A stretch of DNA of 64,000 nt, from positions 13,247,579-13,311,578 of the forward strand of contig NC_043026.1 in assembly GCF_006345805.1 (NCBI RefSeq), written 5' to 3'. The position numbers and the translations under genes are program-made. The notes under the pieces were generated by a model. It saw only the letters and a program-made list of their open reading frames with translations. It was not told the origin of the DNA and ran no database searches. This document shows, piece after piece, positions 15,684-42,178 of this stretch; the first letter of the stretch is position 1; each line of letters begins with the position of its first letter. This stretch comes from Octopus sinensis (Eukaryota).

Positions 15684-16925
15684 TCATGGTTTTATTGCCC
15701 TGTGTATTCTTTGGTGAATAGCAAGACTTGATCTCCCAGGAAACGAATTACCACATGTTTTACACATGAAGCGTTTATCCCCGATATGTGTCCTTTTGTG
15801 ACCTGCAAGATTAGAACTATCAGAGAAACGTTTTCCACATGTCTCACAACGGAAGGGTTTCTCCCCACTATGGATTCGTTTGTGTCTCTCCAAATTAGGA
15901 TTAGTTAGAAACGACTGCCCACACGTTTCACAACGATAGGGCCTTTCTCCTGTGTGTATGCGCCGGTGAGCTCTTAAGTTACTATTAGAAGCGAAATACT
16001 TATCACATATTTCACACCGATACGGTTTTTCCCCAGTATGTTTCCGTTGGTGATCTACAAGACTGGAATTCTCACTGAAAGATTTCCCACAAATTTTACA
16101 GCAGAATGGTCGTTCTCCAGTATGAGTCCTAATGTGTGATTTTAAGTGGCTGCTAACGGTAAAAGATTTGCCACAGAGATCACAGGTGAAGGGTTTCTCT
16201 CCCGTATGTACCCTCACGTGGTTTTTCAAATCAGATTTGACCACAAAAGTTTTCCCACATATATCACAGTGAAAAGGCCTTTCCCCACTGTGTATTCGTC
16301 GATGAGGTATAAGGGTAGAACGTTGAGAGAATGATTTACCACAAGTTTCACAACGATACTGTTTTTCACCCGTGTGGATTCTTTGATGAGCTACAAAAGT
16401 AAAACGATGACAGAATGACTTCTTACATATTTCACAATGATACCGTTTTTCACCCGTATGAATTCTAACGTGAACTACAAGATTATATTCATCAAAGAAT
16501 GCTTTGTCACACGTTTCACAACGATACTTTTTTTCCGAGATATGTATTCGTTTGTGCTTTGTTAAATAACTTTTACAGACGAATGATTTCTCACATAATT
16601 CACACTGATATGGTTTTTCTTCACTGTGTAATTTTTTGTGTTTTCTTAAAGCATGCTTAGTAGCAAAATCTTTCTCACACGTTTCACATCGATATAGTTT
16701 CTCTGTTTTGTGTATTTCTCTGTGCGTTAAAACTTCCTGTTCTGAAGAGAATGTTTTCCTACAAATCTCACAGCGATATTCAGGAATATTCCTTTTATCT
16801 AATAACCTTTCTTTAGATTCATTAATTAAAGGCTTTTCGTCGCTGAATGTCCGTGTAACTGTTTCTGTGTCGGTCTGAACAGTCGGGTTAGAAGTGTTCA
16901 ACCGATTAATGTCCTGCATTTTCAT
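15684..16925 (-). CDS. C2H2 zinc-finger protein, family A copy 1 (413 aa, 13 fingers)
   Basis: Intact ORF with 13 fingers and TGE(K/R)P-type linkers; ~50-aa N-terminus shared with four paralogs. Confidence 0.93.
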
Positions 16926-17788
16926 TCTTCAGAATTCCGGAATATATTAATATATAACGATCCAGTTCCTTGTCTTGAATCTCATAAGAATTTTGATAAC
17001 GTTTGTGGAAAATATGCAATGCAGATATATATTCTATTCGCTACGAAAATGCAGATTGTCAACTGGGTCGTCTCTTTTCTCCTTTAAGAGATGTGGCTAT
17101 AGTTTAATAAAGGCAAAAACGATTTTAGAGAGAGATCATAAATGACAGGTAACACAACTTCAGGTGAACATTTTGTTTTTTCTCACAGCTTATAACAAAA
17201 CAATCCCTTAGCATAATAGTAAATCATTGAAAGACAGGGCGATGCAATTTTCCACTAACGATTGTAAGGTGCGCGCAATGATATTCCGAATGAGTTACAA
17301 ACAATCGACGATGTAACTTCATTTATGATGGAATTAATTAATGATGAAGGTGATAGAACACTGACCCTGAAACATGTAGGCAATCGGATGTCGTCCACAA
17401 ACATTAATGTGTCCTCGTAATATAATTATTACACATTATAACAATTAAATTGCCGAAACGATGGATTTATCGGTGACATAGGTCAGAAGTCCCCAACAAA
17501 ATTTAGTACATTCAAAAATGCCGTTCTTTCAAATGATCCAACCCGTTGTTAATCAAAAGGCATTTGCCAGCAAAATAATTATTTCTTATCAACGAAATAG
17601 TCTCTTCGTGCTCCTTCAATCTGCGACAAACAGCAACCGAATTTGCCTCAAATCATGAATCCAAAGCTAAAATCTACGTGTTTAAAAGTGAAAACAAACT
17701 TAACGGCCCAATTAATGTTTCTTTTAGTTTAATGTAAGTTATTAAACAAAACGTTGTTTTTGTTTCCTATACATGGAATAACACCATC
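16926..17788 (-). promoter_or_regulatory. Conserved upstream block of family A genes (also 21224-21820, 30898-31505, 39239-39970, 39983-40852)
   Basis: Near-identical 600-860 bp non-repeat sequence 5' of all five ATGs; contains a TGCGCGCA palindrome (17270-17277). Confidence 0.5.
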
Positions 17789-17790
17789 AT

Positions 17791-17924
17791 GGCAATCTTT
17801 CGGTATTGGTAAACAATATCAGTCACCCACTCAAAGGGGCTTTTTTCGTCTCGTTTTTTTTTTTCTTCACTTTCTCAGCGTCCTGGTATTAAAAAAACCT
17901 ATGAACAGAGCCCGAAAGATTGCT
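17791..17924. mobile_element. Degenerate Merlin-like mini-element beside the family A upstream block
   Basis: Left end GGCAATCTTTCGGTATTGGTA matches the type-2 TIR at 18/21 positions; right end CCGAAAGATTGCT; related ends at 11686, 44978 and 44981. Confidence 0.55.
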
Positions 17925-18181
17925 TGGAGATACATAGCATGTTTCATAAATCTGCCAGTTTAAAGTATAGTTAAGCATATACCTTTTAAAGTAGCTCTTT
18001 CGTAATTCTATGTTAAATTAATATAATGTGGATGTACAAATTTTACATATTTTATACTAACATATAAAAATATGTACAAAACTGATTAATACGATTAATA
18101 GCCAGGCTAGCAAGAAGCTGAAGGGTGTGTGTTTTTCTTGGCTAAACTGGCAACATGACCATCCGAAATACAACAATATCT

Positions 18182-18553
18182 AGAGGCGCAATGGCCCAGT
18201 GGTTAGGGCAGCGGACTCGCGGTTTCGATTCCCAGACCGGGCGTTGTGAGTGTTTATTGAGCGAAAACACCTAAAGTTCCACGAGGCTCTGGCAGGTTGT
18301 GGGGTGGCGAACCCTGCTGTACTCTCTCACTACAACTTTTTCTCACTCTTACTTCCTGTTTCTGTTGTACCTGTATTTCAAAGGGCCGGCCTTGTCACTC
18401 TCTGTGTCACGCTGAATATCCCCGAGAACTACGTTAAGGGTGCACGTGTCTGTGGAGTGCTCAGCCACTTACACGTTAATTTCACGAGCAGGCTGTTCCG
18501 TTGATTCGGATCAACCGGAACCCTCGACGTCGTAACCGACGGAGTGCTTCTTC
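18182..18553 (+). mobile_element. SINE family 1, full length, deleted-head subfamily
   Basis: 13-bp TSD TACAACAATATCT (18169-18181, 18554-18566); empty paralogous site at 44583-44595. Confidence 0.9.
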
Positions 18554-19221
18554 TACAACAATATCTGTTTCAACACACGATTTCACATAAAAAATCTTGC
18601 ACAACAAATAAATAAACGTAAGATTAAATCATTTAGCAATTAAACTGGACGTATCTAGCCAAAACATTCTTCTTAGTTTATGTTCAAACTGGTCAGGTCT
18701 GGCCTCTCATACCTATCATACAATGTCTTTCTAAAAATTTAGTTTCCTCATCAAAATCTCAAAGCTACAGGATACGCAGGATTAATACAAAACAATGTGG
18801 ATGAATCTGCATTACTTTTGAAAGAATTATGTGAATGCAAAAGATTTAAATAAAAAATTGAAACTTGTTCAACTCAGTTTTGTGTAAAAGTTTAATATTT
18901 AAGTAATTTGCTATTAACTCTTTTGTTACTATATGAAACCAACGGCTAAAAATTCTCTGAAGCAGCAACCCTCCTGATTTTATCAATGAGCCACCATTGC
19001 CTGGTGAAAAGGATTAGCCTGCAACAGTCCTGTGCTGGTGCCATGTAAACGTGTCCATGCCATTGCCACATTAAAAGCACCCAATACACTTTGTGAAGTG
19101 GTTGGCATTAGGAAGGGCATCCAGCCATAGAAACCAAGCCAAATCAGAGTGGAACCTGGTGCAGCTCTCTAGCTTCAGCCAACCAATCCGACCCATGCCA
19201 GCATGGATAACAGATCTTTAT

Positions 19222-19590
19222 CTTCTCTTTTACTTGTTTCAGTCAGTTGACTGCGGCCATGCTGGAGCACCGTCTTTAGTCGAGCAACTCGACCCCGGGA
19301 CTTATTCTTTGTAAGCACAGTACTTATTCTATCGGTCTCTTTTGCCGAACCGCTAAGTGATGGGGACGTAAACACACCAGCATCGGTTGACATGCAATGC
19401 TAGGGGGACAAACACAGACACACACACATACATATATACGACGGGCTTCTTTCAGTTTCCGTCTACCAAATCCAAGGCTTTGGTCGGCTCGAGGCTATAG
19501 TAGAAGACACTTGCCCAAGCTACCACACAGTGGGACTGAACCCGGAACCATGTGATTGGTAAGCAAGCTACTTACCACACAGCCACTACT
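19222..19590 (-). mobile_element. SINE family 3
   Basis: Full family structure; mirrored in the inverted duplicate at 43565-43940; absent from the paralog near 13075. Confidence 0.85.
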
Positions 19591-20065
19591 ATGCCTATGT
19601 CAAAGGACAATAATTAAGATGATGATGTATAAAGAATACTGAATCCATTGCAATTTTTGATAGACAAAATTTTATTTTTTTTCTACACAAAAATATAAGC
19701 AATGTCTGTGCAATGAATGACAAAATGTCAAAAGAGTTGAAATGTTATTGTTACAACAGTGAGAAAGTGAAATGAGAGTCGTTGTGTTGCCGTTGCTGAT
19801 CGTTCATTGTGGTTGTTGTCAGCATCTGTCTATGGATACTCATTGCCTCATCTCTGCTGTCTTTCACTGTTCTCTCTGCTCTAACCCAATGCTCTCTGTC
19901 AAGTAGCCGTGCTGCATTTATATTGATGGTTAGGCTCAGAAACAAGCCTTTCTCTAATGTGACTGTGAATATGAACACTAGAACGGTTTTTCTCAAGCGT
20001 GGATTCCTAAGTGCTTTTTTTTAATCATTTTTTGATCCAAAATATTTTCCACAGATTTCAAAGTT

Positions 20066-21223
20066 TCATGGTTTTATTGCACTGTGTATTCTTTGGTGAA
20101 TAGCAAGACTTGATCTCCCAGGAAACGAATTACCACATGTTTTACACATGAAGCGTTTATCCCCAGTATGAATCCTCTTGTGAACTATAAGATTAGAACT
20201 ATCAGAGAACCATTTACCACATGTCTCACAACGGAAGGGTTTCTCCCCACTATGGATTCGTTTGTGAGTCTTTAAATGGGAATTATTTTTGAATGACTGC
20301 CCACACGTTTCACAACGATAGGGCCTTTCTCCTGTGTGTATGCGCCTGTGTGCTGTTAAGTTACCATTAGAAGCGAAATACTTATCACATATTTCACACC
20401 GATAAGGTTTTTCCCCAGTATGTTTTCCTTGGTGAACCACGAGGCTGGAATTCTCACTGAAAGATTTCCCACAAATTTTACAGCGGAATGGTCGTTCTCC
20501 AGTATGAGTCCTTCTGTGGGATTTTAAGTGGCTGCTAACGGTAAAAGATTTCCCACAGAGATCACAGGTGTAGGGTTTCTCACCCGTATGTACCCTCACG
20601 TGGTTTGTTAAATCACATTTGATCACAAAACTTTTCCCACATATATCACAGTGAAAAGGCCTTTCCCCACTGTGTATTCGTTGATGGGGTATAAGTGTAG
20701 AACGATGACAGAAAGATTTACCACATATTTCACAGTGATACCGTTTTTCTCCCGTGTGGATTCTTACGTGAACTACAAGATCATATTCATCAAAGAAAGC
20801 TTTCTCACACGTTTCACAACGATACTTTTTTTCCGCGGTATGTATTCGTTTGTGCTTTGTTAAATAACTTTTACAGACGAATGATTTCTCACATAATTCA
20901 CACTGATATGGTTTTTCTTCACTGTGTAATTTTTTGTGTTTCCTTAAATAACGATTAGAAGCAAAATCTTTCTCACACGTTTCACATCGATATAGTTTCT
21001 CTGTTTTGTGTATTTCTCTGTGCGTTAAAACTTCATGTTCTGAAGAGAATGTTTTCCTACAAATCTCACAGCGATATTCAAGAATATTCCTTTTATCTAA
21101 TAACCTTTCTTTAGATTCATTAATTAAAGGCTTTTCGTCGCTGAATGTCCGTGTAACTGTTTCTGTATCGGTCTGAACAGTCGGGTTAGAATTGTTCAAC
21201 CGATTAATGTCCTGCATTTTCAT
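20066..21223 (-). CDS. C2H2 zinc-finger protein, family A copy 2 (385 aa, 12 fingers)
   Basis: Intact ORF, exactly 28 aa (one finger) shorter than copy 1; hybrid finger CHRSTLIP. Confidence 0.93.
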
Positions 21224-22530
21224 TCTTCAGAATTCAGGAATATATTAATATATAACGATCCAGTTCCTTGTCTTGAATCTCATAAGAATTTTGATAACGT
21301 TTGTGGAAAATATGCAATGCAGATATATATTCTATTCGCTACGAAAATGCAGATTGTCAACTGGGTCGTCTCTTTTCTCCTTTAAGAGATGGGATATAGT
21401 TTAATAAAGGCAAAAACGATTTTAGAGAGAGATCATAAATGACAGGTAACAGAACTTCGGGTGAACATTTTGTTTTTTCTCGCAGCTTATAACAAAACAA
21501 TCCCTTAGCATAATAGTAAATCATTGAAAGACAGGGCGATGCAATTTTCCACTAACGATTGTAAGGTGCGCGCAATGATATTCCGAATGAGTTACAAACA
21601 ATCGACGATGTAACTTCATTTATGATGGAATTAATTAATGATGAAGGTGATAGAACACTGACCCTGAAACATGTAGGCAATCGGATGTCGTCCACAAACA
21701 TTAATATGTCCTCTTAATATAATTATTACACATTATAACAATTAAATTGCCGAAACGATGGATTTATCGGTGACATAGGTTAAAAGTCCCCAACAAAAAT
21801 TAGTACATTCAGAAATGCCGTTCTTTGGCGTTCATCAGTTTGGGGTTGATTAAATGAGTACCAATTAAAAACAGATGTTGATGTAATCTAATTACCCGCT
21901 GTCCTGAAATTTCTGGCTTTGTGGCAAAATTTGAAATCAAATATTAACACACTTCTGTTTTTATGATATAAGGTAAAACGTAAAGGCAAATAGGAAAAAA
22001 ATCTAGCTAGAAGTTCAAAAAAATACTCTCATTTAATATCTCAGAAGATTGAATTGATTCAATCAACTTAGTCTATGACAAATGCTCTAAAATACTTTTA
22101 TTTCAGTCCTTTAGCATTCAAAAGTAATGCTTATTTATTCATATTGTTTGAATTAATCATGCATTATCTCTGTTACGATATAGGTATACACGTCTGGTGT
22201 AAATTGGTATTACATAAATAAATACTTGGTTGTGGTTATCTAACAATAACGTATCGCAGAAATATATATTAACACAGAACGCATTCCGTATTACTCACGT
22301 GTAGGTATGATACTCAGTATTTACTGTTCAACTACCGACTGCTAAATCATCACATATCGAACTAACACCCATTTCTTTATTTTGTGCATCAGGACAAGTG
22401 AGGCCATAACTTGTGGCCTCTACATGGGATGTAGCCAGCCCACTTATGCATACGTTTCTTCCTTGGGACACAAAACTCTGCTTGCGAGTACCTGTTGAGG
22501 CAAGTGAAATCAGAATTGAAATCGAAATTT

Positions 22531-22879
22531 CGTTTGCCACAGTAAGCAGGCAATCTTCCTCTGTATGGTAGAGGATGGCTGCCACCTGCCATGCCTCGTC
22601 AATTTCAAGGGGCAGTCTACCTATCCTTACTCTGGGCGCTCGTTTGCCACAGTAAGCAGGCAATCTTCCTCTGTATGGTAGAGGATGGCTGCCACCTGCC
22701 ATGCCTCGTCAATTTCAAGGGGCAGTCTACCTATCCTTACTCTGGGCGCTCGTTTGCCACAGTAAGCAGGCAATCTTCCTCTGTATGGTAAAGGATAGCT
22801 GCCACCTGCCATGCCTCGTCAATTTCAAGGGGCAATCTACCTATCCTTACTGTGGGCGCTCGTTTGCCACAGTAAGTAG
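22531..22879. repeat. 110-bp tandem repeat (3 units plus a partial); 2 units at 33277-33496
   Basis: Unit CGTTTGCCACAGTAAGCAGGC...CTGGGCGCT recurs at 22531, 22641 and 22751. Confidence 0.9.
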
Positions 22880-23360
22880 GCAGTGGTGCCCACTCAGCCG
22901 ATTTCAAGGCCACAGTGGAGTATTTATTTATTTGCTTCATTTTCGTTTACAAAGCACACCTCCACCATGCCGAATTTCCGCCCTCTGGTGTAGAACGTGG
23001 TACAGACCTTCACCTCACTCAAACACTCTTTTACTGCTTCTGTCCTTGCTGTTTCTACTTTCTTTGTTGCTATGTTTAACGTTCTGTAGATAATAGTTCT
23101 TTTCTCGATATTCTCAATAACCAAATTTGGGAGGCGTCAGCCTAAGACAGTCTCCCTCCTTTTGCAACAAACTGTTATACTTCTTGAGATTCTTATCTTT
23201 AACTTCTTATTCCACGGACTTGCAGTAGCTCCGCTGACAGGCTTTTGCCAGTCGCTGCAGCATAACTGCCCGCTTCTACTGGTCTATTTTCCATGTTATT
23301 TACAACTTCACCCATAAATGGAGAAGACAAATAAAAATTCCAACAAATTCATCAGGTTAA
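22531..23360 (-). mobile_element. 3'-truncated copy of the ORF1-only element
   Basis: ATG at 23294; collinear with 33277-34340 minus the Helitron. Confidence 0.6.
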
Positions 23361-23363
23361 CAA

Positions 23364-23945
23364 TCATCATCATCGTTTAACGTCCGCTCTCCATGCTAGC
23401 ATGAGTTGGACGATTTGACTGAGGACTGGCAAACCAGATGGCTGCACCAAGCTCCAATCTTGATCTGACAGAGTTTCTACAGCTGGATGCCCTTCCTAAT
23501 GCCAACCACTCCGAGAGTGTAGTGGGTGCTTTTGTATTCCACCAGCACAAGGGTCAGTCAGGCAGTTCTGGCAACGACCTCGCTTGAACCCTTTTACACA
23601 TGCCCCCAGTACAGGTGTCAGTAAGGTGACATTGGTAATGATCACGCTCGAATGGTGCCCTTTTACGTCCCACTGACACGGAAGCCAGTTGGCAACGGCC
23701 ACGCTCAAATGGTCTTTTTTTACATGCCACCTGGACAGCAGCCATTCCAGCGGCACTGGCAATGACCTCACTCGAATGTTTATTCACGTGCCACCGGCAC
23801 AAGTGGTAGTGAGGCGATGCTGGTAATGATCACGCTTGAATGGTGCTTTTCACGTGCCACCGGCATAGAAGCCACTTAGCCACACTAGCAACGACCACGC
23901 TCGGATGGTGCTCTTAGCGCTCCACTAGCACGGATGCCAGTCATC
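23364..23945 (-). mobile_element. Family C copy with about 7 degenerate internal ~60-bp subunits
   Basis: Repeated TGGTGC..TTTTACGTGCCAC-like units after the core. Confidence 0.75.
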
Positions 23946-24132
23946 GAATAAGAATTACAGTACTCACATTTTCCAATTTACTCAAATACAACGACGACGT
24001 CAAACTATCACCTGTCAACTATTCCCATGACAGTTCTCTCAGCCCTAAGGCAGCAAGCTGGCAGAAACGTTAGCACGCCAGGCGAAAGGCTGAGCATGAC
24101 TAATTCAAAACAATGTGACATTTACGGTATAT

Positions 24133-24520: not shown

Positions 24521-24582
24521 AGTATCTAAAGATGGCTATAGAGAGTGTAACTCTTTAACATTCAGATTCTTGTGTGAAATGT

Positions 24583-24896
24583 AACGTTGAATCCAGCAAA
24601 GTCCATCTTCTCACCCCTACCATACATCAATGGAAATTGTAGTTGTGATACCAGTGCGGGTGGCACATAAATGAACCATCCAAACATGGCTGTTGCCAGC
24701 GCCGACCCGACTGGCCTCCGTGCCGGTGGCACGTAAAAAGCACCCTCTATGCTCATGGAGTGGTTGGCGTTAGGAAGGGCATCCAGCTGTAGAAACACTG
24801 CCAGATCAGACTGGAGCCTGGTGCAGCCTTCTGGCTTCCTAGACCCCAGTTGAACCGTCCAACCCATGCTAGCATGGAAAGTGGATGATGATGATG
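24583..24896 (+). mobile_element. Family C fragment
   Basis: Family core and (GAT)n tail. Confidence 0.75.
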
Positions 24897-25330
24897 AAAC
24901 AATACACTGTTTATTAAACTCACAATGGAAGTGCAAATAAAGTTATCATCTACTCTTGAATTTCAGCCGCTTGTTTTGTTGTAGTATATAATATTCTTAA
25001 GTAAGCAAAGCACCCATTACACTCTCGGAATGGTTGGCATTAGGAAGGACATCCAGTTGTAGAAAAAACAATGCTAAACCGACTGGAGTGTGGTGCAGCC
25101 TTCCAGTGTGTCAGCCCGGTCAAACTGTCCAACCCCCATATCAGCATGGACAATGAATGTTAAATGATGGTGACGATGATGATGATAATGAATTGTTAAC
25201 ATCTCAGACAACATTTTCATTGATCATGACACTTATAAAACCATCCCCTTTTTCCAAGCAACCTTTTACTGCACAAGCAATATATATATATATATATCAT
25301 CATCATCATCGTTTGATATATATATATATG

Positions 25331-25567: not shown

Positions 25568-25877
25568 ATATATATATAATAGAAATATGTTACAAAAAGA
25601 AAATAGAGACTACACGTGGTAATGTAAGGGGAAAGTAAGAAAAATAGACGAAAATGCACATTGTAAATCAAAAAAGTGAAGGGTTTTTATGAAAAGTAAG
25701 GAAAGATATATACAATTAGATGAACTGTGGTAGGAATAAAAGCAATAAAAGTCATTATTGTGAAATTATTAAAGAGATTGAACCATACCGGTTTCGTAAA
25801 TTACTCATTATTGCTTTGAATACAATTCATTGCTTTGAATGCACACCAATTAAATATATATATATATATATATATAT

Positions 25878-26205
25878 CATCATCATTTAGCGTCCGTTTT
25901 CCATGCTAGCATGGGTTGGACGGTTCAACTGGGGTCTGTGAAGCCGGAAGGCTGCATCAGGCCCAGTCAGATCTGGCAGTGTTTCTACAGCTGGATGCCC
26001 TTCCTAACGCCAACCACTCTGTGAGTGTAGTGGGTGCATTTTACGTGCCACCCGCACAGGTGCCAGATGGAGCTGGCAAACGGCCACGAACAGATGGTGC
26101 TTTTACGTGCCACCGGCACGGGGGGCCAGGCGAGACTGGCAACAGACACAAACGGATGGTGCTTTTACATGCCACCGGCACGGGGGCCAGGCGAGGCTGG
26201 CAATT
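25878..26205 (-). mobile_element. Family C fragment
   Basis: (CAT)n, core and 3 subunits. Confidence 0.75.
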
Positions 26206-27790: not shown

Positions 27791-28163
27791 CATCATCATC
27801 ATCATTTAACATCCGCTTTCCATGCTGGCATGGGTTGGACGGTTCAGCTGGGGTCTGGGGAGCCCGAAGGCTGCACCAGGCCAGTCAGATCTGGCAGTGT
27901 TTCTACAGCTAGATGCCCTTCCTAACGCCAACCACTCCAAGAGTGTAGTGGGTGATTTTATGTGCCACCGACACAGGTGCCAGACGAGGCTGGCGAACGG
28001 CCATGCTCGGATGGTGTTTTTTTTTTTTTTTTTTTATGTGCCACCGACACAGGTGGCAGACGGCCACGCTCGGATGGTGTTTTTATGTGCCACCGACACA
28101 GGTGCCAGATGAGGCTGGCGAACGGCCACGATCGGATGGTGTTTGTTACGTGCCCACAGCACG
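27791..28163 (-). mobile_element. Family C fragment inserted in the ghost 3' flank
   Basis: Interrupts the GGATCA...TTTGGTG sequence, which is uninterrupted at 37639-37660. Confidence 0.78.
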
Positions 28164-28653: not shown

Positions 28654-28688
28654 TTGAGCTTATTTTTTATATCTGAATTTCATTTGAA

Positions 28689-29020
28689 TCATCATCATTT
28701 AACGTCCGTTCTCCATGCTAGCGTGGGTTGGACGGTTCGACCGGGGATCTGGGAAGCCAGAAGGCTGCACCAGACTCCAGTCTTATCTGGCAATGTTTCT
28801 ACAGCTGGATACCCTTCCTAACGCCAACCACTCCGTGAGTGTAGTGGGTGCTTTTTACATGCCAACTGCACAGGTGCCAGGCGAGGCTGGCAACGGCCAC
28901 GGTCGGATTGGTGTATTTTACGTGCCACCGGCACAGAGGCCAGTCGAAGCGGCGCTGGCATCGGCCACGAGTCGGATAGTGCTTTTTACGTACCACCAGA
29001 CCAGGGATCCTGGCTGGTTC
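28689..29020 (-). mobile_element. Family C fragment
   Basis: (CAT)n and core. Confidence 0.75.
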
Positions 29021-29733: not shown

Positions 29734-30897
29734 TTAGGGCACTGCAATAGCACTGTGTACTTTTTGGTGAATAACAAGACTTGTTCTCCCAGAAAACATA
29801 TTCCCACACGTTTTACACATGAAGCGTTTATTATCCCCAGTATGAATCCTTTTGTGAACTATAAGATTAGAACTATCAGAGAAACATTTCCCACACGTCT
29901 CACAATGGTAGGGTTTCTCCCCACTATGGATTCGTTTGTGTCTCTTCAAATGACAATTATTCTTAAATGACTCCCCACATGTTTCACAACGATAGGGCCT
30001 TTCTCCTGTGTGTACCCGCCTGTGTGTTGCTAAGTTACCATGAGAAGCGAAATATTTATCACATGTTTCACAATGATAGGGTTTTTCTCCAGAGTGTCTC
30101 CTTTGGTGAACCACAAGACTGGAATTCGTATTGAACGATTCGCCACATATTTTACAGCAGAATGGTTTCTCTCCACTATGAATCCTCCTGTGTTTTTTTA
30201 AAACGCTTCTAACATTAAACGATTTGCCACAGAGATCACAGGTGAAGGGTTTCTCTCCCGTATGTACCCTCACGTGGTTTGTTAAATCAGATCTGCTCAC
30301 AAAACTTTTCCCACATATATCACAGTCAAAGGGCTTTTCCCCACTGTGTATTCGTTGATGAGCTACAAGAGTAGAACGTTGAGAGAATGATTTACCACAC
30401 ATTTCACAACGATAGTTTTTTTCTCCCGTGTGGATTCGTACGTGAACTACAAGATCATATTCATCAAAGAATGTTTTCTCACACGTTTCACAACGATACT
30501 TTTTTTCTGCTGTATGTATTCGTTTGTGCTTTGTTAAATAACTTTTACAGACGAATGATTTCTGACATATTTCACACTGATATGGTTTTTCTTCACTGTG
30601 TAATTTTTTATGATTTGTTAAATAACGATTAGCAGCAAAATCTTTCTCACACGTTTCACATCGATATAGTTTCTCTGTTTTGTGTATTTCTCTGTGCGTT
30701 AAAACTTCCTGTTCTGAAGAGAATGTTTTCCTACAAATCTCACAGCGATATTCAGGAATATTCCTTTTATCTAATAACCTTTCTTTAGATTCATTAATTA
30801 AAGGCTTTTCGTCGCTGAATGTCCGTGTAACTGTTTCTGTATCGGTCTGAACAGTCGGGTTAGAAGTGTTCAACCGATTAATGTCCTGCATTTTCAT
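29734..30897 (-). CDS. C2H2 zinc-finger protein, family A copy 3 (387 aa, 12 fingers)
   Basis: Intact ORF; C-terminal half almost identical to copy 4. Confidence 0.93.
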
Positions 30898-31671
30898 TCT
30901 TAAAAAGAATTCAGGAATATATTAATATATAACGATCCAGTTCCTTGTCTTGAATCTCATAAGAATTTTGATAACGTTTGTGGAAAATATGCAATGCAGA
31001 TATATATTCTATTCGCTACGAAAATGCAGATTGTCAACTGGGTCGTCTCTTTTCTCTTTTAAGAGATTTGGATATAGTTTAATAAAGGCAAAAACGATTT
31101 TAGAGAGAGATCATAAATGACAGGTAACAGAACTTCGGGTGAACATTTTGTTTTTTCTCACAGCTTATAACAAAACAATCCCTTAGCATAATAGTAAATC
31201 ATTGAAAGACAGGGCGATGCAATTTTCCATTAACGATTGTAAGGTGCGCGCAATGATATTCCGAATGAGTTACAAACAATCGACGATGTAACTTCATTTA
31301 TGATGGAATTAATTAATGATGAAGGTGATAGAACACTGACCCTGAAACATGTAGGCAATCGGATGTCGTCCACAAACATTAATGTGTCCTCGTAATATAA
31401 TTATTACACATTATAACAATTAAATTGCCGAAACGATGGATATATCGGTGACATAGGTCAGAAGTCCCCAACAAAATTTAGTACATTCAGAAATGCCGTT
31501 CTTTGGCGTTCATCAGTTTGGGGTTGATTAAATGTGTACAAATTAAAAACAGATGTTGATGTAATCTATTTACCCGCTGTCCTGAAATTTCTGGCTTTGT
31601 GGCAAAATTTGAGATCAAATATTAGCACACTTCTGTTTTAATGATATAAAGTAAAACTTAAAGGCAAATAT

Positions 31672-32269: not shown

Positions 32270-34340
32270 TTATTTATTCTGGCACTACGGCCATAACTTA
32301 GGGGAGATAGCACAAGGACAGACAAAGCAATAGATTGGGGTACATGAAAATACATATCGGATGAATCATGAATATAATTAAAATGAGAATGAAATGGCTT
32401 TCCTACCCTCCAAAGGAGGTAGTTCCATATGACTGTTTTCTTAAATTAGTTTTACTTTACAGTCCTGTATCTTTTCTTTAACACAAAATTACAACAAATG
32501 CTGCATTATTATATCGTCAAAAATTTCAACAGACGGCAGCTCGTCGTATCTATACTGAAATCCTGTTATTTCAACTCTTTCCCCCCGCCCCAAATAGTTC
32601 TACTAACAACTCCCCTCTTTCTCTATCCAACAGCACACCCTTCTTACCTTCATGGTTTTCCATTTTCACTCTGATTATATTTTTCATTATTGTTACTCTC
32701 TTTTCAATTTCAACACTTTTTTTAATATATTATGAAGCTTCTTAATTTTCTCCCTGTACATATTGTTCTCTGATATCCTTCACCACTCACTTCGTCCATC
32801 ATAAATTTCTCTGTCTCTTTCATTTCCTTCCTTCTTCCTTGCTAGTTGAAAGCGACAGTTCATGCGTTCGCATTTCACTTGATTTTATATCTTTTCTTTC
32901 TTATTCTTCTCTTCATTTGTCTTTTTTTTTTCTTATTGGGATTTTTGGTGGTGATTCTAAGTACTTTTTTCTTTTCCCCACTGTAAATGGCTCTTCCATT
33001 TCTCTTCCTCTACTGCTGTACTCCCTTGAATTTCTTTTTCTGTTATTTCACTCTCGTGTTTCTGGGGACACTTGGCCTTCATGTGTCCCCCTTACTCCAC
33101 ACAAAAAACATATTGGAGGTCTAGCCTCCATAACAATCCTCAATCTAGTTTCATCCGGCAAAACCAGCTTTCCACAATCTTATGGATGTCTGGCAGACTT
33201 ATATGGACTGTCACCTCTAGCCCATATCCGCACCAGTTCACCTCCGTAGTTTTGGACACTTTCAGAATTTCCGCATCTTCCTCTGTATGGTAGAGGATGG
33301 CTGCCACCTGCCATGCCTCGTCAATTTCAAGGGGCAATCTACCTATCCTTACTCTGGGCGCTCGTTTGCCACAGTAAGCAGGCAATCTTCCTCTGTATGG
33401 TAAAGGATAGCTGCCACCTGCCATGCCTCGTCAATTTCAAGGGGCAATCTACCTATCCTTACTCTGGGCGCTCGTTTGCCACAGTAAGTAGGCAGTGGTG
33501 CCCACTCAGGCGATTTCAAGGCCACAGTGGAGTATTTATTTCTTAGCTTCATTTTCGTTTACAAAGCACACCTCCACCATGCCGAATGTCCGCCCTCTGG
33601 TGTAGAACGTGGTACAGACCTTCACCTTTCTCAAACACTCTTCTACTGCTTCTGTCGCTGCTATTTCTACCTTCTTCGTTGCTATGTTTAACGTTCTGTA
33701 GATAATAGTTCTTTTCTCGATATCTCTCTATATATAAACGGCAGTTTGTCTGTCTGTGTGTCTGTCAGGTTGTACCCTCACCCTGACCACGGCTTTCAAC
33801 CGATTCTGATGAAACTTGACACACACATAGCCCAATGTCATAATTCAAAACTAACGCAGCGAAAATTTTGAAAAGTTCCCCCAGTTCTGAAAAAAATCGA
33901 TAAATTCGACATGGGGTCGAGAATTAAAAACACAAACCACAGACTGTATAGGGGGCGCAACTCGACCTTTTTAACTCTCAAAAAAAATTTACCATAATTT
34001 TTTTTCCATTTTTTTCTATTTTTTGGCTATAACTCTCTAAAAATACTTTATAGTTATTTCCCTTACAAACCCGAGCAACGCCGGGCGATACTGCTAGTTC
34101 TCAATAACTTCTTTGGGAGGCGTCAGCCTAAGACAGTCTCCCTCCTTTTGCAACAAATCTTTATACTTCTTGAGGTTCTTATCTTTAACTTCTTATTTCA
34201 CAAACTTGCAGTAGCTCCGCTGACAGGCTTTTGCCAGTCGCTGCAGCATAACTGCCCGCTTCTACTGGTCTATTTTCCATGTTATTTACAACTTCACCCA
34301 TAAATGGGGAAGACAAATAAAAATTCCAACAAATTCAACA
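32270..34340 (-). mobile_element. ORF1(gag-like)-only non-LTR element, degenerate, with a nested Helitron
   Basis: ATG at 34280: MENRPVEAGSYAAA...VIENIEKRT...RIGRLPLEIDEAW...; frameshifted CCHC knuckle CFLCGVRGHMKAKC near 33065-33115; K/E-rich tail; AATAAA-type end; no ORF2 seen. Confidence 0.6.
33723..34097 (+). mobile_element. Non-autonomous Helitron
   Basis: 5'-TC, 3'-CTAG, subterminal hairpin CCCGAGCAACGCCGGG, inserted between A and T with no TSD; empty site GATA^TTCTC at about 23107-23115. Confidence 0.88.
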
Positions 34341-34659
34341 GGTTAACAATAATCATCATCATCATTTAACGTGCTCATGATAAATATTCTTCAATGTCAG
34401 TAGATTAGAAGTTTAGATTTGTAAAAAAATTTCTTACATCCAGCAATTAAATAAGTTTCCTTTTGTATATATTTGTTTGCCTTTTTAAGTGACCCACCCT
34501 CCTCTTCACTATCAGGAGGCACAAGCACTTACACACACATGTACACATGCAACGAGAATTTCTGCCTACCAAATTCAATCACAAAGCTTTGGTTGGCCGA
34601 AGGCTAAAGCAGAAGACACTTGCCCAAGGTGCTGTGCAGTGGGACTGAACTCGAAACCA

Positions 34660-34900
34660 TGTGGTTGAGAAGATGGTTAATGCTAAAAGATTTACAAAGA
34701 ATACTTTCAACAAATCTTCTGAATATTCTCCTCCTGGACATAACTAGTAACAACAAGGCTTTTGGATGTATAATTTTCCACAAATTTTATATACAAATGT
34801 TTTACCCTTGCATTTTTCTCATTAACCCCTGTACTATTCTAATCAGGATTAATGAGGGATCTCATTGTAATTCACAGTAATGGATTTCCCAAAAACTTTA
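34660..34900 (-). pseudogene. Detached paralog of the family A fossil-finger 3' flank
   Basis: Reverse-complement similarity to 42840-43060. Confidence 0.5.
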
Positions 34901-35546
34901 ACCCTTCAGCACATAAACTAGCCATATCTGACCTCAGATACCGGTCGAACCGTCCAACCCATGCTAGCATGGAGAACAGACGTTAAACGATGATGATGAT
35001 ATAGACTGTAAGTTTCAATCAGTATTGAATTTTGTTTGTTCGATATTTACATCCATTTGGTAAAAATTAAGAGATAAACTCATCAATAATTTGAATGACA
35101 ATTGTATGACATTTTTATATGTATTTGTCTCTCTAAGTGAATATAGAAAAATAGACAATACACTGTTTATTAAACTCACAATGGAAGTGCAAATAAAGTT
35201 ATCATCTACTCTTGAATTTCAGCCGCTTGTTTTGTTGTAGTATATAATATTCTTAAGTAAGCAAAGCACCCATTACACTCTCGGAATGGTTGGTGTTAGG
35301 AAGGACATCCAGTTGTAGAAAAAACAACGCCAAACCGACTGGAGTGTGGTGCAGCCTTCCAGTGTGTCAGCCCGGTCAAACTGTCCAACCCCCATATCAG
35401 CATGGACAATGAATGTTAAATGATGGTGACGATGATGATGATAATGAATTGTTAACATCTCAGACAACATTTTCATTGATCAGGACACTTATAAAAACCA
35501 TCCCCTTTTTCCAAGCAACCTTTTACTGCACAAACAATATATATAT

Positions 35547-36209
35547 ATAATAATAAATATTAGGGAATAAATCCAAATTTACAGGGAAAAATCAGATTTA
35601 TGATTGAATCCAATTTTATAGTAAAATATAATACAATATTAATTAGAGACAAAACCACTATTATGCAAATCAAACAAAGAAAGACTTAATCCAATACATA
35701 AAAAATTTTATATAAATTAAATATAATTAAGATTAATTAAGATATCTAACACCAACCATTCTGAGAGTGCAATGGGTGCTTTGCTTGCTTAAGAATATCT
35801 TAATTAATTTTTTATGTATTGGATTAAGTCTTTCTTTGTTTGATTTGCATAATAGTGGTTTTGTCTCTAATTAATATATATATATATAATAATAAATATT
35901 AGGGAATAAATCCAAATTTACAGGGAAAAATCAGATTTATGATTGAATCCAATTTTATAGTAAAATATAATACAATATTAATTAGAGACAAAACCACTAT
36001 TATGCAAATCAAACAAAGAAAGACTTAATCCAATACATAAAAAATTTTATATAAATTAAATATAATTAAGGTTAATTAAGATATCTAACACCAACCATTC
36101 TGAGAGTGCAATGGGTGCTTTGCTTGCTTAAGAATATCTTAATTAATTTTTTATGTATTGGATTAAGTCTTTCTTTGTTTGATTTGCATAATAGTGGTTT
36201 TGTCTCTAA

Positions 36210-36225
<16 letters not shown>
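35547..36225. repeat. Tandem ~340-bp dimer, each unit containing a ~68-bp inverted repeat
   Basis: 35547-35880 and 35887-36220 are near-identical; internal arms TAATTAGAGAC...CATAAAAAATT and their reverse complement. Confidence 0.85.
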
Positions 36226-36242
<17 letters not shown>

Positions 36243-36423
36243 ATAGAAATATGTTACAAAAAGAAAATAGAGACTACACATGGTAATGTAAGGGGAAAGT
36301 AAGAAAAATAGACAAAAAAACACATTGGAAATCAAAAAAAGTTAAGGCTTTTTATGCAAAGTGACGAAAGATATATACAATTAGATGTTTTGTGTTTAAC
36401 CTCTTGTGGGTAGTAAAGAAATG

Positions 36424-37360
36424 GGTATCTTTTAGGAACTTTTCATTGCATGGGTAGCCCCAAAGGAGAAAAGTCAAGTTGATAAATCATTTTTTTTGCT
36501 TCATCGAACAGCTCCTGAAATTTTTCTTCGCTGCATATAGCTCCCCACCTTCACCAGTTTGGCATTATGCAACATGCTACCTATATTGACAATGGTACTT
36601 TGAAAAGATCTGCTGAATCCTTCAAGGAATTGAAATAGTGAAACTACAAATTGCAGTCCAAGAATACAGTTGCCCATAGAGTGACATGTAAGAATACCAT
36701 TAGTTCTGGATGTAATGTTGGTGCCAAACTCATTGGTTGCTTCTTGTAAAGAAATGAGGACATCTGAATAATTTTGAAGGTCTTTGACTGGAGAAATTCG
36801 TTAGCCATCGAGTAGGACAAACGCTTTAAGGGGCATGGTGATGATACTTCCTTTTTTTCATCATGTGATAAATATGTGTGCTTAAATTTCCCTTATGTAC
36901 TATATAGTTATTTCTTTACTACCCACAAGGGGCTAAACACAGAGAGGACAGACAAACGGATTAAGTCGATTATATCGACCCCAGTGCATAACTGGTACTT
37001 AATTTATCGACCCCGAAAGGATGAAAGGCAAAGTCAACCTCGGCGGAATTTGAACTCAGAACGTAGCGGTAGGCGAAATACCACTAAGCATTTCGCCCGG
37101 CGTGCTAACGATTCTGCCAGCTAGCTGCCTTCCCAGTTCCTAAAGGATACCAGGAAGGAAATGTATTAAAATATCAACACTGCACTGTTTTGGATCATTA
37201 GAAAGAGCAGTACTTGCAGGTAGTGGATACTGCAATAGCAAATTTGAAAGATAATTTCTTTTCAGGATTTAGGAGATTATTAAAAACTGAGCAATATTTT
37301 ACTCAATGGAAATTTTGTGCTGAAGTGATCATGCAGTATTCAGAGCTTGATGAATTTCCT
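36424..37360. mobile_element. Second copy of the hAT transposase relic, partly inverted
   Basis: 36424-36665 is the reverse complement of 27065-27300; 37135-37360 is direct. Confidence 0.68.
36908..37125 (-). mobile_element. SINE family 2 monomer
   Basis: Complete body and head. Confidence 0.8.
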
Positions 37361-37716
37361 TTAACCCTTTCGATACCAACCAGGCTGAAACCGCCCCTGG
37401 TTCTGTAGTACAAATGTCTTGTTTTCATAAGTTTTGAATTAATATCTTCCACCAAACCTTAGTCACAATTAATGTTCCTAACACTAGCTTAATGATAACC
37501 AAGTTATTTTACTAAATTCTTTATTGTATCTAAAATAATTGAGAGAAACATAGAGCATCTCAAAATAAATATAGTAACAAAAGGGTTAAGGAATGAAATA
37601 GTTTTTTATAGAAATCATCATAGTGGATCATCTCTCAAGGATCAGTGTAAAATGTTTGGTGAAATGCAACCAGAAATCCATCGCATGTTTCCAAATGTTG
37701 AGCAGTTGCTCAGTCT

Positions 37717-38022
37717 ACTTTTTTTATTCCTTCTCGAGCCATTCCTGGCTCATAAGGGCCGGTTTCCCGGTTTCTTTGGCGTATAGGTTCCCCACCTGGA
37801 TGGGACGCCGGTCCGTCGCAGGTGAGCTGCAAGATGCAGGAGGAAAGAGTGAGAGAAAGTTGTGGCAAAAGAGCCACCAGAAATTCGCAATTACCTTCTG
37901 CCGGATTCGCAAAGAGCTTAGGTGTTTCACTCATAAACACACACATTGCCCGGTCTGAGATTCGAACCTGCGATCCTTCAACCCCGAGTCCGCTGCTCTA
38001 ACCACTAGGCCATGTGCCTCCA
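37717..38022 (-). mobile_element. Same SINE insertion in the 3' UTR of A copy 4
   Basis: Same TSD CTCAGTCT and near-identical sequence to 29376-29681. Confidence 0.88.
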
Positions 38023-38074
38023 CTCAGTCTCCTTATAGTGTGTCCAACCAGTTCTTGTGAGGATGAAAGATCTT

Positions 38075-39238
38075 TTAGGGCACTGCAATAGCACTGTGTA
38101 CTTTTTGGTGAATAACAAGACTTGTTCTCCCAGAAAACATATTCCCACACGTTTTACACATGAAGCGTTTATTATCCCCAGTATGAATCCTTTTGTGAAC
38201 TATAAGATTAGAACTATCAGAGAAACATTTCCCACACGTCTCACAATGGTAGGGTTTCTCCCCACTATGGATTCGTTTGTGTCTCTTCAAATGACAATTA
38301 TTCTTAAATGACTCCCCACATGTTTCACAACGATAGGGCCTTTCTCCTGTGTGTACCCGCCTGTGTGTTGCTAAGTTACCATGAGAAGCGAAATACTTAT
38401 CACATGTTTCACAATGATAGGGTTTTTCGCCAGAGTGTCTCCTTTGGTGAACCACAAGACTGGAATTCGTATTGAACGATTCCCCACACATTTTACAGCA
38501 GAATGGTTTCTCTCCACTATGAATCCTCCTGTGTGATTTTAAAACGCTTTTAACATTAAACGATTTGCCACAGAGATCACAGGTGTAGGGTTTCTCTCCC
38601 GTATGTACCCTCACGTGGTTTGTTAAATCAGATTTGATCACAAAACTTTTCCCGCATATATCACAGTGAAAAGGCCTTTCTCCACTGTGTAGTCTTTGAT
38701 GAGCTACAAGAGTAAAACGATGACAGAAAGATTTACCACATATTTCACAATGATACCGTTTTTCACCCGTATGGATTCTTACGTGAACTACAAGATCATA
38801 TTCTTCAAAGAATGTTTTCTCACACGTTTCGCAACGAAATTTTTTTTCTGCGGAATGTATTCGTTTGTGCTTTGTTAAATAACGTTTACAGACGAATGAC
38901 TTCTCACATACTTCACACTGATATGGTCTTTCTTCACTGTGTAATTTTTTATGATTTGTTAAATTACTATTAGTAGCAAAATATTTCTCACACGTTTCAC
39001 ATCGATATAGTTTCTCTGTTTTGTGTATTTCTCTGTGCGTTAAAACTTCCTGTTCTGAAGAGAATGTTTTCCTACAAATCTCACAGCGATATTCAGGAAT
39101 ATTCCTTTTATCTAATAACATTTCTTTAGATTCATTAATTAAAGGCTTTTCGTCGCTGAATGTCCGTGTAACTGTTTCTGTATCGGTCTGAACAGTCGGG
39201 TTAGAAGTGTTCAACCGATTAATGTCCTGCATTTTCAT
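38075..39238 (-). CDS. C2H2 zinc-finger protein, family A copy 4 (387 aa, 12 fingers)
   Basis: Intact ORF with 12 fingers; ends HSAIAVP like copy 3. Confidence 0.93.
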   Translation of the reverse strand: MKMQDINRLNTSNPTVQTDTETVTRTFSDEKPLINESKEMLLDKRNIPEYRCEICRKTFSSEQEVLTHREIHKTEKLYRCETCEKYFATNSNLTNHKKLHSEERPYQCEVCEKSFVCKRYLTKHKRIHSAEKKFRCETCEKTFFEEYDLVVHVRIHTGEKRYHCEICGKSFCHRFTLVAHQRLHSGERPFHCDICGKSFVIKSDLTNHVRVHTGEKPYTCDLCGKSFNVKSVLKSHRRIHSGEKPFCCKMCGESFNTNSSLVVHQRRHSGEKPYHCETCDKYFASHGNLATHRRVHTGERPYRCETCGESFKNNCHLKRHKRIHSGEKPYHCETCGKCFSDSSNLIVHKRIHTGDNKRFMCKTCGNMFSGRTSLVIHQKVHSAIAVP

Positions 39239-40852
39239 TCTTCAGAATTCCGGAATATATTAATATATAACGATCCAGTTCCTTGTCTTGAATCTCATAA
39301 GAATTTTGATAACGTTTGTGGAAAATATGCAATGCAGATATATATTCTATTCGCTACGAAAATGCAGATTGTCAACTGGGTCGTCTCCTTTCTCCTTTAA
39401 GAGATGTGGCTATAGTTTAATAAAGGCAAAAACGATTTTAGAGAGAGATCATAAATGACAGGTAACACAACTTCAGGTGAACATTTTGTTTTTTCTCACA
39501 GCTTATAACAAAACAATCCCTTAGCATAATAGTAAATCATTGAAAGACAGGGCGATGCAATTTTCCATTAACGATTGTAAGGTGCGCGCAATGATATTCC
39601 GAATGCGTTACAAACAATCGACGATGTAACTTCATTTATGATGGAATTAATTAATGATGAAGGTGATAGAACACTGACCCTGAAACATGTAGGCAATCGG
39701 ATGTCGTCCACAAACATTAATGTGTCCTCGTAATATAATTATTACACATTATAACAATTAAATTGCCGAAACGATGGATTTATCGGTGACATAGGTTAAA
39801 AGTTCCCAACAAAATTTAGTACATTCAAAAATGCCATTCTTTCAAATGATCCAACCCGTTGTTAATCAAAAGGCATTTGCCAGCAAAATAATTAGTTATC
39901 AACGAAATAGTCTCTTCGTGCTCCCTCAGCCTGCGAAAAATAGCCACCGAATTTGCCTCAAATCCAAAGCAATGTTTTTGTTTGGTGCTATTCCATGTAT
40001 GTGAAACAAAAACAACATTTTGTTTAATAACTTACATAAAAACCATTAAACTAAAATAAACATTAATTAGGCCGTTAAGTTTGTTTTCACTTTTGAACAC
40101 GTAGATTTTAGCTTTGGATTCATGATTTGAGGCAAATTCGGTGGCTATTTTTCGCAGGCTGAAGAAGCACGAAGAGACTATTTCGTTGATAAGAAATAAT
40201 TATTTTGCTGGCAAATACCTTTTGATTAACAACGGGTTGGATCAATTGAAAGAACGGCATTTCTGAATGTTCTAAATTTTGTTGGGGACTTTTAACCTAT
40301 GTCACCGATAAATCCATCGTTTCGGCAATTTAATTGTTATAATGTGTAATAATTATATTACGAGGACATATTAATGTTTGTGGACGACATCCGATTGCCT
40401 ACATGTTTCAGGGTCAGTGTTCTATCACCTTCATCATTAATTAATTCCATCATAAATGAAGTTACATCGTCGATTGTTTGTAACGCATTCGGAATATCAT
40501 TGCGCGCACCTTACAATCGTTAATGGAAAATTGCATCGCCCTGTCTTTCAATGATTTACTATTATGCTAAGGGATTGTTTTGTTATAAGCTGCGAGAAAA
40601 AACAAAATGTTCACCCGAAGTTCTGTTACCTGTCATTTATGATCTCTCTCTAAAATCGTTTTTGCCTTTATTAAACTATATCCAAATCTCTTAAAAGAGA
40701 AAAGAGACGACCCAGTTGACAATCTGCATTTTCGTAGCGAATAGAATATATATCTGCATTGCATATTTTCCACAAACGTTATCAAAATTCTTATGAGATT
40801 CAAGACAAGGAACTGGATCGTTATATATTAATATATTCCTGAATTCTGAAGA

Positions 40853-42178
40853 ATGAAAATGCAGAACATTAATCGGTTGAACACTTCTAACCCGACTGTT
40901 CAGACCGATACAGAAACAGTTACACGGACATTCAGCGACGAAAAGCCTTTAATTAATGAATCTAAAGAAAGGTTATTAGATAAAAGGAATATTCCTGAAT
41001 ATCGCTGTGAGATTTGTAGGAAAACATTCTCTTCAGAACAGGAAGTTTTAACGCACAGAGAAATACACAAAACAGAAAAACTATATCGATGTGAAACGTG
41101 TGAGAAAGATTTTGCTACTAAGCATGCTTTAAGGAAACACAAAAAATTACACAGTAAAGAAAAACCATATCAGTGTGAATTATGTGAGAAATCATTCGTC
41201 TGTAAAAGTTATTTAACAAAGCACAAACGAATACATACAGCAGAAAAAAAGTATCGTTGTGAAACGTGTGAGAAAACATTCTTTGATGAATATGATCTTG
41301 TAGTTCACGTAAGAATTCATACGGGAGAAAAAAACTATCGTTGTGAAACTTGTGAGAAGTCATTCAGTCATCGTTTTACTCTGGAAGCTCATCAAAGAAT
41401 CCACACCGGTGAAAAACAGTATCGTTGTGAAACTTGTGGTAAATCATTCTATCAACGTTCTACTCTTGTAGCTCATCAACGAATACACAGTGGGGAAAGG
41501 CCTTTTCACTGTGATATATGTGGGAAAACTTTTGTGGTCAAATCTGATTTGAAAAACCACGTGAGGGTACATACGGGAGAGAAACCCTTCACCTGTGATC
41601 TCTGTGGCAAATCGTTTCATGTTAAAAGCGGTTTAAAATTACACAGGAGGATTCATAGTGGAGAAAAACCCTACACCTGTGATCTCTGTGGCAAATCTTT
41701 TACCGTTAGCAGCAACTTAAAATCACACATGAGGACTCATACTGGAGAACGACCATTCTGCTGTAAAACGTGTGGGAAATCTTTCAGTGAGAATTCCAGT
41801 CTTGTAGATCACCAACGGAAACATACTGGGGAAAAACCGTATCAGTGTGAAATATGTGATAAGTATTTCGCTTCTAATAGTAACTTAAGAGATCACCGGC
41901 GCATACACACAGGAGAAAGGCCCTATCGTTGTGAAACGTGTGGGCAGTCGTTTCTAACTAATTCTAAATTGGAGAGACACAAACGAATCCATAGTGGGGA
42001 GAAACCCTACCATTGTGAGACATGTGGGAAACGGTTCTCTGATAGTTCTAATCTTGCAGGTCACAAAAGGACACATATCGGGGATAAACGCTTCATGTGT
42101 AAAACATGTGGTGATTCGTTTCCTGGGAGATCAAGTCTTGCTATTCACCAAAGAATACACAGGGCAATAAAACCATGA
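40853..42178 (+). CDS. C2H2 zinc-finger protein, family A copy 5 (441 aa, 14 fingers), inverted
   Basis: Intact ORF, 28 aa longer than copy 1; head-to-head with copy 4. Confidence 0.93.

Follow-up and report, generated by a model that had tools for sequence, protein, structure and literature searches.

Cephalopod genomes are very rich in C2H2 zinc finger (ZNF) genes. In an open reading frame (ORF) survey, Wells et al. 2023 (PMC10547256) found upward of a thousand of them in many mollusks. In the species studied, no finger positions varied more than the contact residues, and octopus ZNF motifs were predicted to be enriched in consensus sequences of transposable elements (TEs). Holzinger et al. 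2025 (PMC12513265) described octopus C2H2 expansions with neural expression and members split between co-expression modules, and called an arms race with TEs "now an open question". The proposal of octopus ZNFs that lack KRAB and are linked to TEs is not new (Albertin 2015, cited in PMC10547256; PMC10547256; PMC12513265). Whereas these studies were genome-wide, we analysed here a single locus, within a stretch of 64,000 nt of Octopus sinensis (~CM016888.1:13,247,579-13,311,578, assembly GCA_006345805.1, the one assembly examined), hereafter called the window. Like the published expansions, it is an Octopus tandem cluster of poly-C2H2 genes lacking KRAB, in a repeat-rich setting. Its five paralogs, named Family A (copies c1 to c5), probably form a cluster of functional single-ORF genes belonging to the lineage-specific octopus ZNF expansion, and evolving by finger recombination, conversion between paralogs and replacement at contact sites. 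New and specific to this locus are three fusions of fingers F5 and F6, a homogenised 5' block including non-coding DNA, an island of divergence at the F2 recognition helix, and a module shared between copies that consists of the N-terminus and F1.

Three other systems invite comparison. Mammalian KRAB-ZNF clusters, such as the ZNF91 subfamily on chromosome 19 (Emerson and Thomas 2009, cited in PMC10547256), also consist of tandem paralogs with in-register finger gain and loss, replacements focused at helix positions -1, +2, +3 and +6, and a constrained Cys/His/linker scaffold. Family A is not a KRAB-ZNF family, because it has no KRAB domain, nor any other known effector domain; its whole protein lies in one ORF, and the ratio of nonsynonymous to synonymous substitution rates (dN/dS, omega) of its contact sites as a class is not distinguishable from 1. 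The FiNZ-ZNFs of cyprinid fish (Wells et al. 2023) are a lineage-restricted family parallel to the KRAB-ZNFs, with a short N-terminal sequence lacking known domains. Positive selection was found there in 4 of 7 clades, and TEs were derepressed on knock-down; the likeness of Family A to them noted here is one of architecture. The PRDM9 array likewise varies in finger number and has hypervariable contact residues. Family A is not PRDM9-like: PR/SET and KRAB are both lacking, the fingers of an array differ from one another by 17-45/84 nt and so do not resemble a minisatellite, and homogenisation links the 5' ends of paralogs rather than the fingers.

Results

Five intact single-ORF genes

The five Family A genes are intact, with 13, 12, 12, 12 and 14 fingers in c1 to c5, a finger period of exactly 28 amino acids (aa) in all copies, and products of 413, 385, 387, 387 and 441 aa. 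Lengths step by 28 aa, with 2 extra aa in each of c3 and c4 (GDNKR and AIAVP). These counts, steps and additional residues had been given in an earlier note on this stretch, and were reproduced from the ORFs. The ORFs match Pfam zf-C2H2 (E=4e-75) and zf-H2C2_2 (E=2e-105), and have the Krueppel-type spacing C-x2-C-x12-H-x3-H, with TGEKP-like linkers between fingers. No match to KRAB (PF01352), SCAN, BTB or SET was found in the ORFs, Pfam giving C2H2-type domains only, both in Family A and in the neighbouring Family B, and the 49-aa N-terminus of Family A matches no Pfam domain. An in-frame stop lies two codons 5' of the Family A ATG. Judged from the ORFs, the genes are thus KRAB-less, as the earlier note had proposed for a cephalopod, and the source is indeed Octopus sinensis, the c5 protein having an exact match on CM016888.1 of GCA_006345805.1; an upstream coding exon is still conceivable. 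With five Family A and three Family B genes within 64 kb, the locus is a tandem cluster of the type described in Octopus.

The public annotation of this region places one minus-strand gene model, with a 1956-aa product, across both ends of a 21-kb locus (window ~30853-52178). It covers at least c3 and c4, and is probably several ZNF ORFs fused together. No separate gene is recorded for c3, and single-CDS gene calls exist only for c5 and for B2 of Family B. None of the c1-c5 proteins was present in the protein collection by exact-sequence cluster look-up. With no further Family A sequences beyond these five, statistical power is limited.

Replacements are concentrated at contact residues

We compared the ten finger slots common to all five copies, taking helix positions -1, +2, +3 and +6 as contact positions; the sample is five sequences from one assembly. 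Events counted by parsimony were nonsynonymous rather than synonymous in a ratio of 27:3 at contact positions, versus 51:45 elsewhere (odds ratio 7.9, P=1.5e-4). Amino-acid columns were variable in 20/40 cases at contact positions, versus 45/235 in the rest of the finger (Fisher P=7e-5). The ratio of nonsynonymous to synonymous differences per site (pN/pS, Nei-Gojobori, all pairs summed) was 2.6 for contact codons, 0.72 for the other helix codons (+1, +4, +5), 0.37 for other finger positions, 0.23 for linkers and 0 for zinc ligands. The contact value is partly inflated because the synonymous count is low at contact codons: pS is 0.059 there versus 0.17-0.22 at other finger codons (F1-F13, five copies), so that synonymous differences are about 3 times rarer, which may be due to chance or to codon composition. 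When contact dN was set against array-wide synonymous divergence (dS, NG86), omega was ~1.0-1.3.

Likelihood estimates were obtained with our own GY94-type codon model (F3x4, five taxa, all 15 topologies, a-priori site classes). Omega for contact, other helix and remaining positions was 0.82, 0.41 and 0.25 on one tree, and 0.74, 0.37 and 0.24 on six segment-specific trees; equality of contact and remaining positions was rejected by likelihood ratio test (LRT) with P=2e-6 and P=1e-5, respectively. Contact residues are thus replaced about 3 times more often than the scaffold, at an approximately neutral rate, and omega above 1 is absent for them as a class. The finger scaffold is under purifying selection: with array dS at 0.06-0.24, none of the five ORFs has been interrupted, and the Cys/His ligands are unchanged. 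The concentration of changes in recognition helices noticed earlier was therefore real, both in the event counts and by LRT (P<=1e-5). The recombination-aware estimate bore out the excess at contact sites (0.74 vs 0.24) and not an omega above 1. The faster build-up of amino-acid replacements at base-contacting positions falls mainly on F2, F7, F8, F10 and F11, the helices of F1, F3, F4, F12 and F13 hardly changing.

A comparison of codon models M1a and M2a on a single tree gave a "signal" (P=0.002) that was discarded. Its sole site with omega above 1 was a linker codon of F4 (AAC vs CGG), which sits at the F4/F5 recombination junction, making the signal an artefact.

Mosaic copies and a homogenised 5' block

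In all five copies, the ~560-600 bp of non-coding DNA upstream of the ORF diverge pairwise by 1.1-4.1%, the N-terminus has 0-3 differences per 147 nt, and F1 differs by 0-2 nt. The block did not recur in the window beyond the five Family A copies. Over the first 77 aa, copies differ by 0-4 residues; the near-identity reported earlier for the N-terminal ~75 aa thus stands, with a range slightly wider than the 1-3 residues given. Its use as a protein-level contrast to the helices does not stand, as the few N-terminal changes have a pN/pS of ~1 and the identity runs on into non-coding DNA. The identity is therefore a property of the DNA rather than the outcome of protein constraint, and points to homogenisation by gene conversion. 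Synonymous sites of the arrays have diverged 5-10 times more (0.06-0.24) than the non-coding DNA just upstream (0.011-0.041): either the flanks were homogenised or the arrays are unusually fast. We infer preferentially that selection acts against homogenisation of the arrays; exchange with copies outside the window is also possible.

Genealogies conflict along the gene. Upstream DNA groups c1 with c4, and F3-F4 group c3 with c5; sites in F7 and F11-F12 join c1 and c5, with c2 on the c3/c4 side, and sites in F9-F10 and F13 join c3 and c4, with c2 on the c1/c5 side. Six segment-specific trees fit far better than a single one (summed log likelihood, lnL, -2036.3 vs -2135.0). The 3' flanks form a patchwork as well: those of c2 (18554-19945) and c5 (43216-44595) are 98% identical over 1.4 kb, though the arrays differ by a dS of ~0.14, c3 and c4 share ~500 bp at 97-100% identity, and beyond this no alignment between the flanks of the two groups is possible. 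The 3' half of c4 is nearly identical to its c3 counterpart. Such conflicts indicate gene conversion, and conversion together with unequal crossing-over between paralogs is the simplest reading of the mosaic copies and patchwork flanks. Either process would make each copy a mosaic, and would hold ~800 bp at the 5' end nearly identical.

Copies c4 and c5 face each other in a ~970-bp head-to-head inverted repeat, so that their conserved upstream blocks almost abut. This arrangement could serve as a bidirectional promoter region, or could be an inversion-prone palindrome.

Assembly and polishing are difficult where tandem paralogs are this similar, and with a single assembly at hand, polishing could have exaggerated the 5' identity. 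At the extreme, copies would be chimeric or over-polished, and both the mosaic structure and the 5' identity unreal. We consider this very improbable, given that the five ORFs are intact and in register, that indels are exact multiples of 84 bp, and that each copy has unique flanks.

The F2 and F11 helices

From c1 to c5, the F2 helix reads TKHALRK/SNRYLRK/ANRYLTN/TNSNLTN/TKHALRK, and the F11 helix TNPNLER/NNSHLKT/NNCHLKR/NNCHLKR/TNSKLER, exactly as reported earlier. The differences in F2 lie nearly all within codons -1 to +6. These 21 bp hold 11 events, versus 25 in the other 854 bp between position -560 and the end of F2 (Poisson 7e-11), which is 18-fold denser than the surroundings and makes the helix by far the densest 21-bp window of the 5' block. 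Positions -1, +2 and +3 each show three residues among the five copies, joined by single-base steps. When the non-coding DNA upstream served as the neutral standard on a shared tree, M2a was preferred over M1a by 2dlnL=32.7 (P=8e-8), with an omega of ~24 for the F2 helix; on the coding sites alone of the F2 block, the comparison was not significant (P=0.13). A similar but weaker cluster is found in the F11 helix.

The source of these changes was sought within the window. No donor for the variant helices was found among non-orthologous fingers in the window, none of which fits any helix segment better than the orthologues do (Hamming comparison), and the contexts of minor alleles had no excess of in-window matches relative to those of major alleles (10/148 vs 12/214, k=11). 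Micro-conversion within or between arrays was accordingly rejected as a source of helix or synonymous changes, in-window donors being absent by both measures, and point substitution is the simplest source. Short-tract conversion might still have brought in helix cassettes, either from fingers of other ZNFs or from paralogs beyond the window, and so mimic a clustered replacement. The changes are indeed clustered and often affect two bases of a codon (GCT>TAT, CAT>AGT, AGG>ACA), and the genome holds many related arrays. Besides the lack of in-window donors, the F2 states form a stepwise single-base series, and we judge such an import improbable.

The age of the differences is a separate matter. 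The genealogy of the F2 helix (c1=c5; c3 near c4; c2 intermediate) fits that of the 3' array and not that of the flanking 5' block, so that the helix differences may be old, and merely protected from conversion. Conversion would then have overwritten the flanks (5' block, F3-F4), while tracts that erased the helix were purged; the 5- to 10-fold higher divergence of the arrays agrees with this. Yet the tracts would have to stop on both sides of a 21-bp segment, and the arrays are themselves mosaic, hence not immune to conversion. We hold this scenario to be somewhat unlikely. It would still involve selection that maintains diversity, without new adaptive substitutions. Whether the F2 substitutions are new, or old and protected, differences between helices would have selective value in both cases, but in neither case are new adaptive substitutions in F2 proven.

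Selection or relaxed constraint

The data so far suggest diversifying selection at contact sites, selection favouring the helix differences or protecting them. Several results weigh against this. Contact omega is indistinguishable from 1 (P=0.37 on the single tree, 0.22 on segment trees), and M2a brings no significant gain over M1a with segment trees (2dlnL=1.26). The strong F2 result presumes that helix and flanks share a genealogy, and best topologies differ: ((c1,c5),c2,(c3,c4)) for the coding block, and ((c1,c4),c3,(c2,c5)) when upstream DNA is added. The F2 helix exceeds expectation only modestly when the rate of the whole array is taken as the standard (~11 events observed, ~3.6 expected). 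Finally, B2 and B3 of Family B, a comparison with little power, differ without enrichment at contact sites (5/40 vs 21/240 columns). Diversifying selection in the form put forward in the earlier note is thus not demonstrated, the strong signal being confined to the F2 helix and to the case where its flanks share its genealogy.

Constraint may instead have been relaxed. In redundant duplicates, exposed helix positions of some fingers would drift neutrally, and the scaffold would be kept for folding. This agrees with contact omegas of 0.74-0.82, with the lack of gain from M2a, M1a placing ~30% of codons in the omega=1 class, and with the variability of the non-canonical position +5, which is about that of contacts (7 events). 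However, 20/40 contact columns are invariant despite a dS of up to ~0.24, and since half of these columns do not vary, many helices are under constraint. Moreover, F2 and F11 have accumulated many of the changes, sites there having three states, F2 shows the high local density described above, and all five ORFs are still intact. Neutral drift is, to our mind, somewhat unlikely as the explanation, while deserving serious consideration.

Gain, loss and fusion of fingers

Copies c1 and c5 hold F5 and F6 as separate fingers, 24/84 and 18/84 nt apart, respectively, and c2, c3 and c4 each have one F5/F6 hybrid finger, with a junction that is different in every copy (Table 1). The hybrid of c2, F5-like in its 5' part and F6-like in its 3' part, had been recognised earlier and holds at the DNA level; the fusions of c3 and c4 had been overlooked. 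Type F8a is found in c3 and c4, type F8b in c1 and c2, and both together only in c5, as previously noticed. F8a and F8b are 17/84 nt apart, about as much as other fingers differ when the c1/c5 group is compared with c3/c4. No finger pairs of the array are more alike than F5/F6 and F8a/F8b, at 17-24/84 nt versus 25-45 for all other pairs.

The different junctions suggest three independent in-register deletions of 84 bp, or unequal exchanges, starting from a two-finger state; as far as junctions tell, this favours three independent F5/F6 losses rather than one duplication. Unequal recombination in register within the array would thus add, delete or fuse whole fingers.

The N-terminal module

A whole-protein homology search was dominated by generic vertebrate ZNFs, and uninformative on paralogs. 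A query with the N-terminus, and its alignment, gave no candidates or significant matches in an indexed database. When the first 77 aa were searched exhaustively and without a profile, six cluster representatives (50%-identity clusters) were recovered, at 42-57% identity. In each, the alignment begins at the protein's own N-terminus, preceded in one case by a 104-aa extension of the gene model, and 5/6 begin with the equivalent Met. Five carry names of ZNFs from O. bimaculoides or O. sinensis, and three of these lie on other contigs. The helix of the first finger, SSEHEVF.H, is almost invariant among them. The 49-aa N-terminus and F1 are thus, from these alignments, a family-defining module within Octopus, placed like KRAB or FiNZ; as in FiNZ-ZNFs, an N-terminal sequence is common to many ZNF paralogs of one lineage.

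Neighbouring genes and repeats

Three Family B ZNF ORFs flank the Family A cluster. ORFs antisense to their arrays were rejected as genes, since they merely arise from the periodicity of the ZNF coding sequence. A short, presumably SINE-like interspersed repeat of ~250-350 bp is present at ~25 places on both strands, with 71-93% identity and an internal sub-repeat of ~63 bp; an Rfam scan for SINE or tRNA-like RNAs gave nothing at gathering thresholds. Spurious ORFs through this repeat read "..LDALPNANHS.SV.GAFYVPPA..". The "YIYIYMY" ORFs of a low-complexity tract were likewise rejected as coding, and are simple repeat. Outside the ORFs, ~71% of the DNA consists of sequence found more than once in the window, in keeping with the earlier remark that TEs fill the locus; this setting says nothing on ZNF targets.

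Table 1. Positions of the features discussed, numbered from the first nucleotide of the window.
Feature	Position	Strand	Description
Family A c1	15684..16925	-	separate F5 and F6; F8b
Family A c2	20066..21223	-	mosaic: F13 with c1/c5, F7 and F12 with c3/c4
Family A c3	29734..30897	-	F8a type; F3-F4 group with c5
Family A c4	38075..39238	-	F8a; 5' block nearest c1 (1.1% divergence)
Family A c5	40853..42178	+	F5+F6, F8a+F8b; annotated single-CDS gene in GCA_006345805.1
F2 recognition helix (-1..+6)	c5 41117..41137; c1 16641-16661; c2 20939-20959; c3 30613-30633; c4 38954-38974	+ (c5)	21-bp divergence island
F11 recognition helix	c5 41957..41977; c1 15885-15905; c2 20267-20287; c3 29941-29961; c4 38282-38302	+ (c5)	second helix-focused replacement cluster
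Homogenised 5' block, c5	40253..41083	+	~560-600 bp upstream, N-terminal 49 codons and F1
Upstream parts of 5' block	c1 16926-17525; c2 21224-21823; c3 30898-31497; c4 39239-39838; c5 40253-40852
c4/c5 head-to-head inverted repeat	38998..41093		arms 38998-39964 and 40124-41093, 97.5% identical, ~160-bp spacer
c2 fused finger F5/F6	20657..20740	-	F5-type to ~nt 39, F6-type from nt 40
c3 fused finger F5/F6	30331..30414	-	F6-type from ~nt 19 on; junction near finger start; almost wholly F6-type
c4 fused finger F5/F6	38672..38755	-	F5-type to ~nt 63, then F6-type end and linker
c5 unfused F5+F6 pair	41336..41503	+	c1 equivalent 16275-16442
c5 F8a+F8b	41588..41755	+	each other copy has just one type
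Family B ZNF ORFs	B1 7028-7969; B2 49966-50979; B3 57065-58090	-	10 canonical fingers each; N-terminus ME..LCE..FPD.IK.EK
ORFs antisense to Family B arrays	7096-7662; 50262-50768; 57361-57858	+	repetitive "YHRYHTDMV" periodicity
Interspersed repeat, examples	186-509; 3724-3972; 12425-12646; 24651-24897; 25856-26200; 27795-28119; 28688-28997; 62855-63159
TA/CA-rich low-complexity tract	~62076-62900	both	overlapping "YIYIYMY" ORFs

Discussion

Whole-finger differences, together with changes mainly at DNA-reading residues, are the ordinary way in which such clusters evolve, and the locus adds an instance rather than a new principle. It is a compact and well-resolved example, with five intact paralogs, clear finger events, helix-focused replacements and a shared 5'/N-terminal module, and would lend itself well to binding assays and to tests of repression by the N-terminal module.

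The paralogs would share a regulatory and N-terminal module and differ in DNA-binding specificity, and they may well have different targets. For motifs predicted by the recognition code, the published accuracy is ~5%. Rather than acting in TE defence, the genes could be tissue-specific regulators, neural or developmental, that subfunctionalise. Expanded cephalopod C2H2 genes are reported to be active mainly in nervous tissue, in different co-expression modules (PMC12513265), and no repressor domain was recognised by Pfam in Family A or B. On the other side, the near-identical 5' blocks weigh against regulatory divergence among c1-c5, and octopus ZNF motifs are predicted to be TE-enriched (PMC10547256). 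Neither point is specific to this locus, and such a regulatory role is quite possible, if a little short of an even chance.

One can go further, and suppose that the N-terminus and the atypical, invariant F1 (SSE[HQ]EV[FL]) act as an effector module peculiar to Octopus and functionally analogous to KRAB or FiNZ. The module would be kept identical by conversion, along with the promoter, while selection shields or drives the divergence of single helices such as that of F2, and the readers would be aimed at SINE-rich repeats in the octopus genome. This extension is doubtful at present. If it were true, Family A would combine a single chassis, for regulation and effector function, with DNA readers that can be exchanged.

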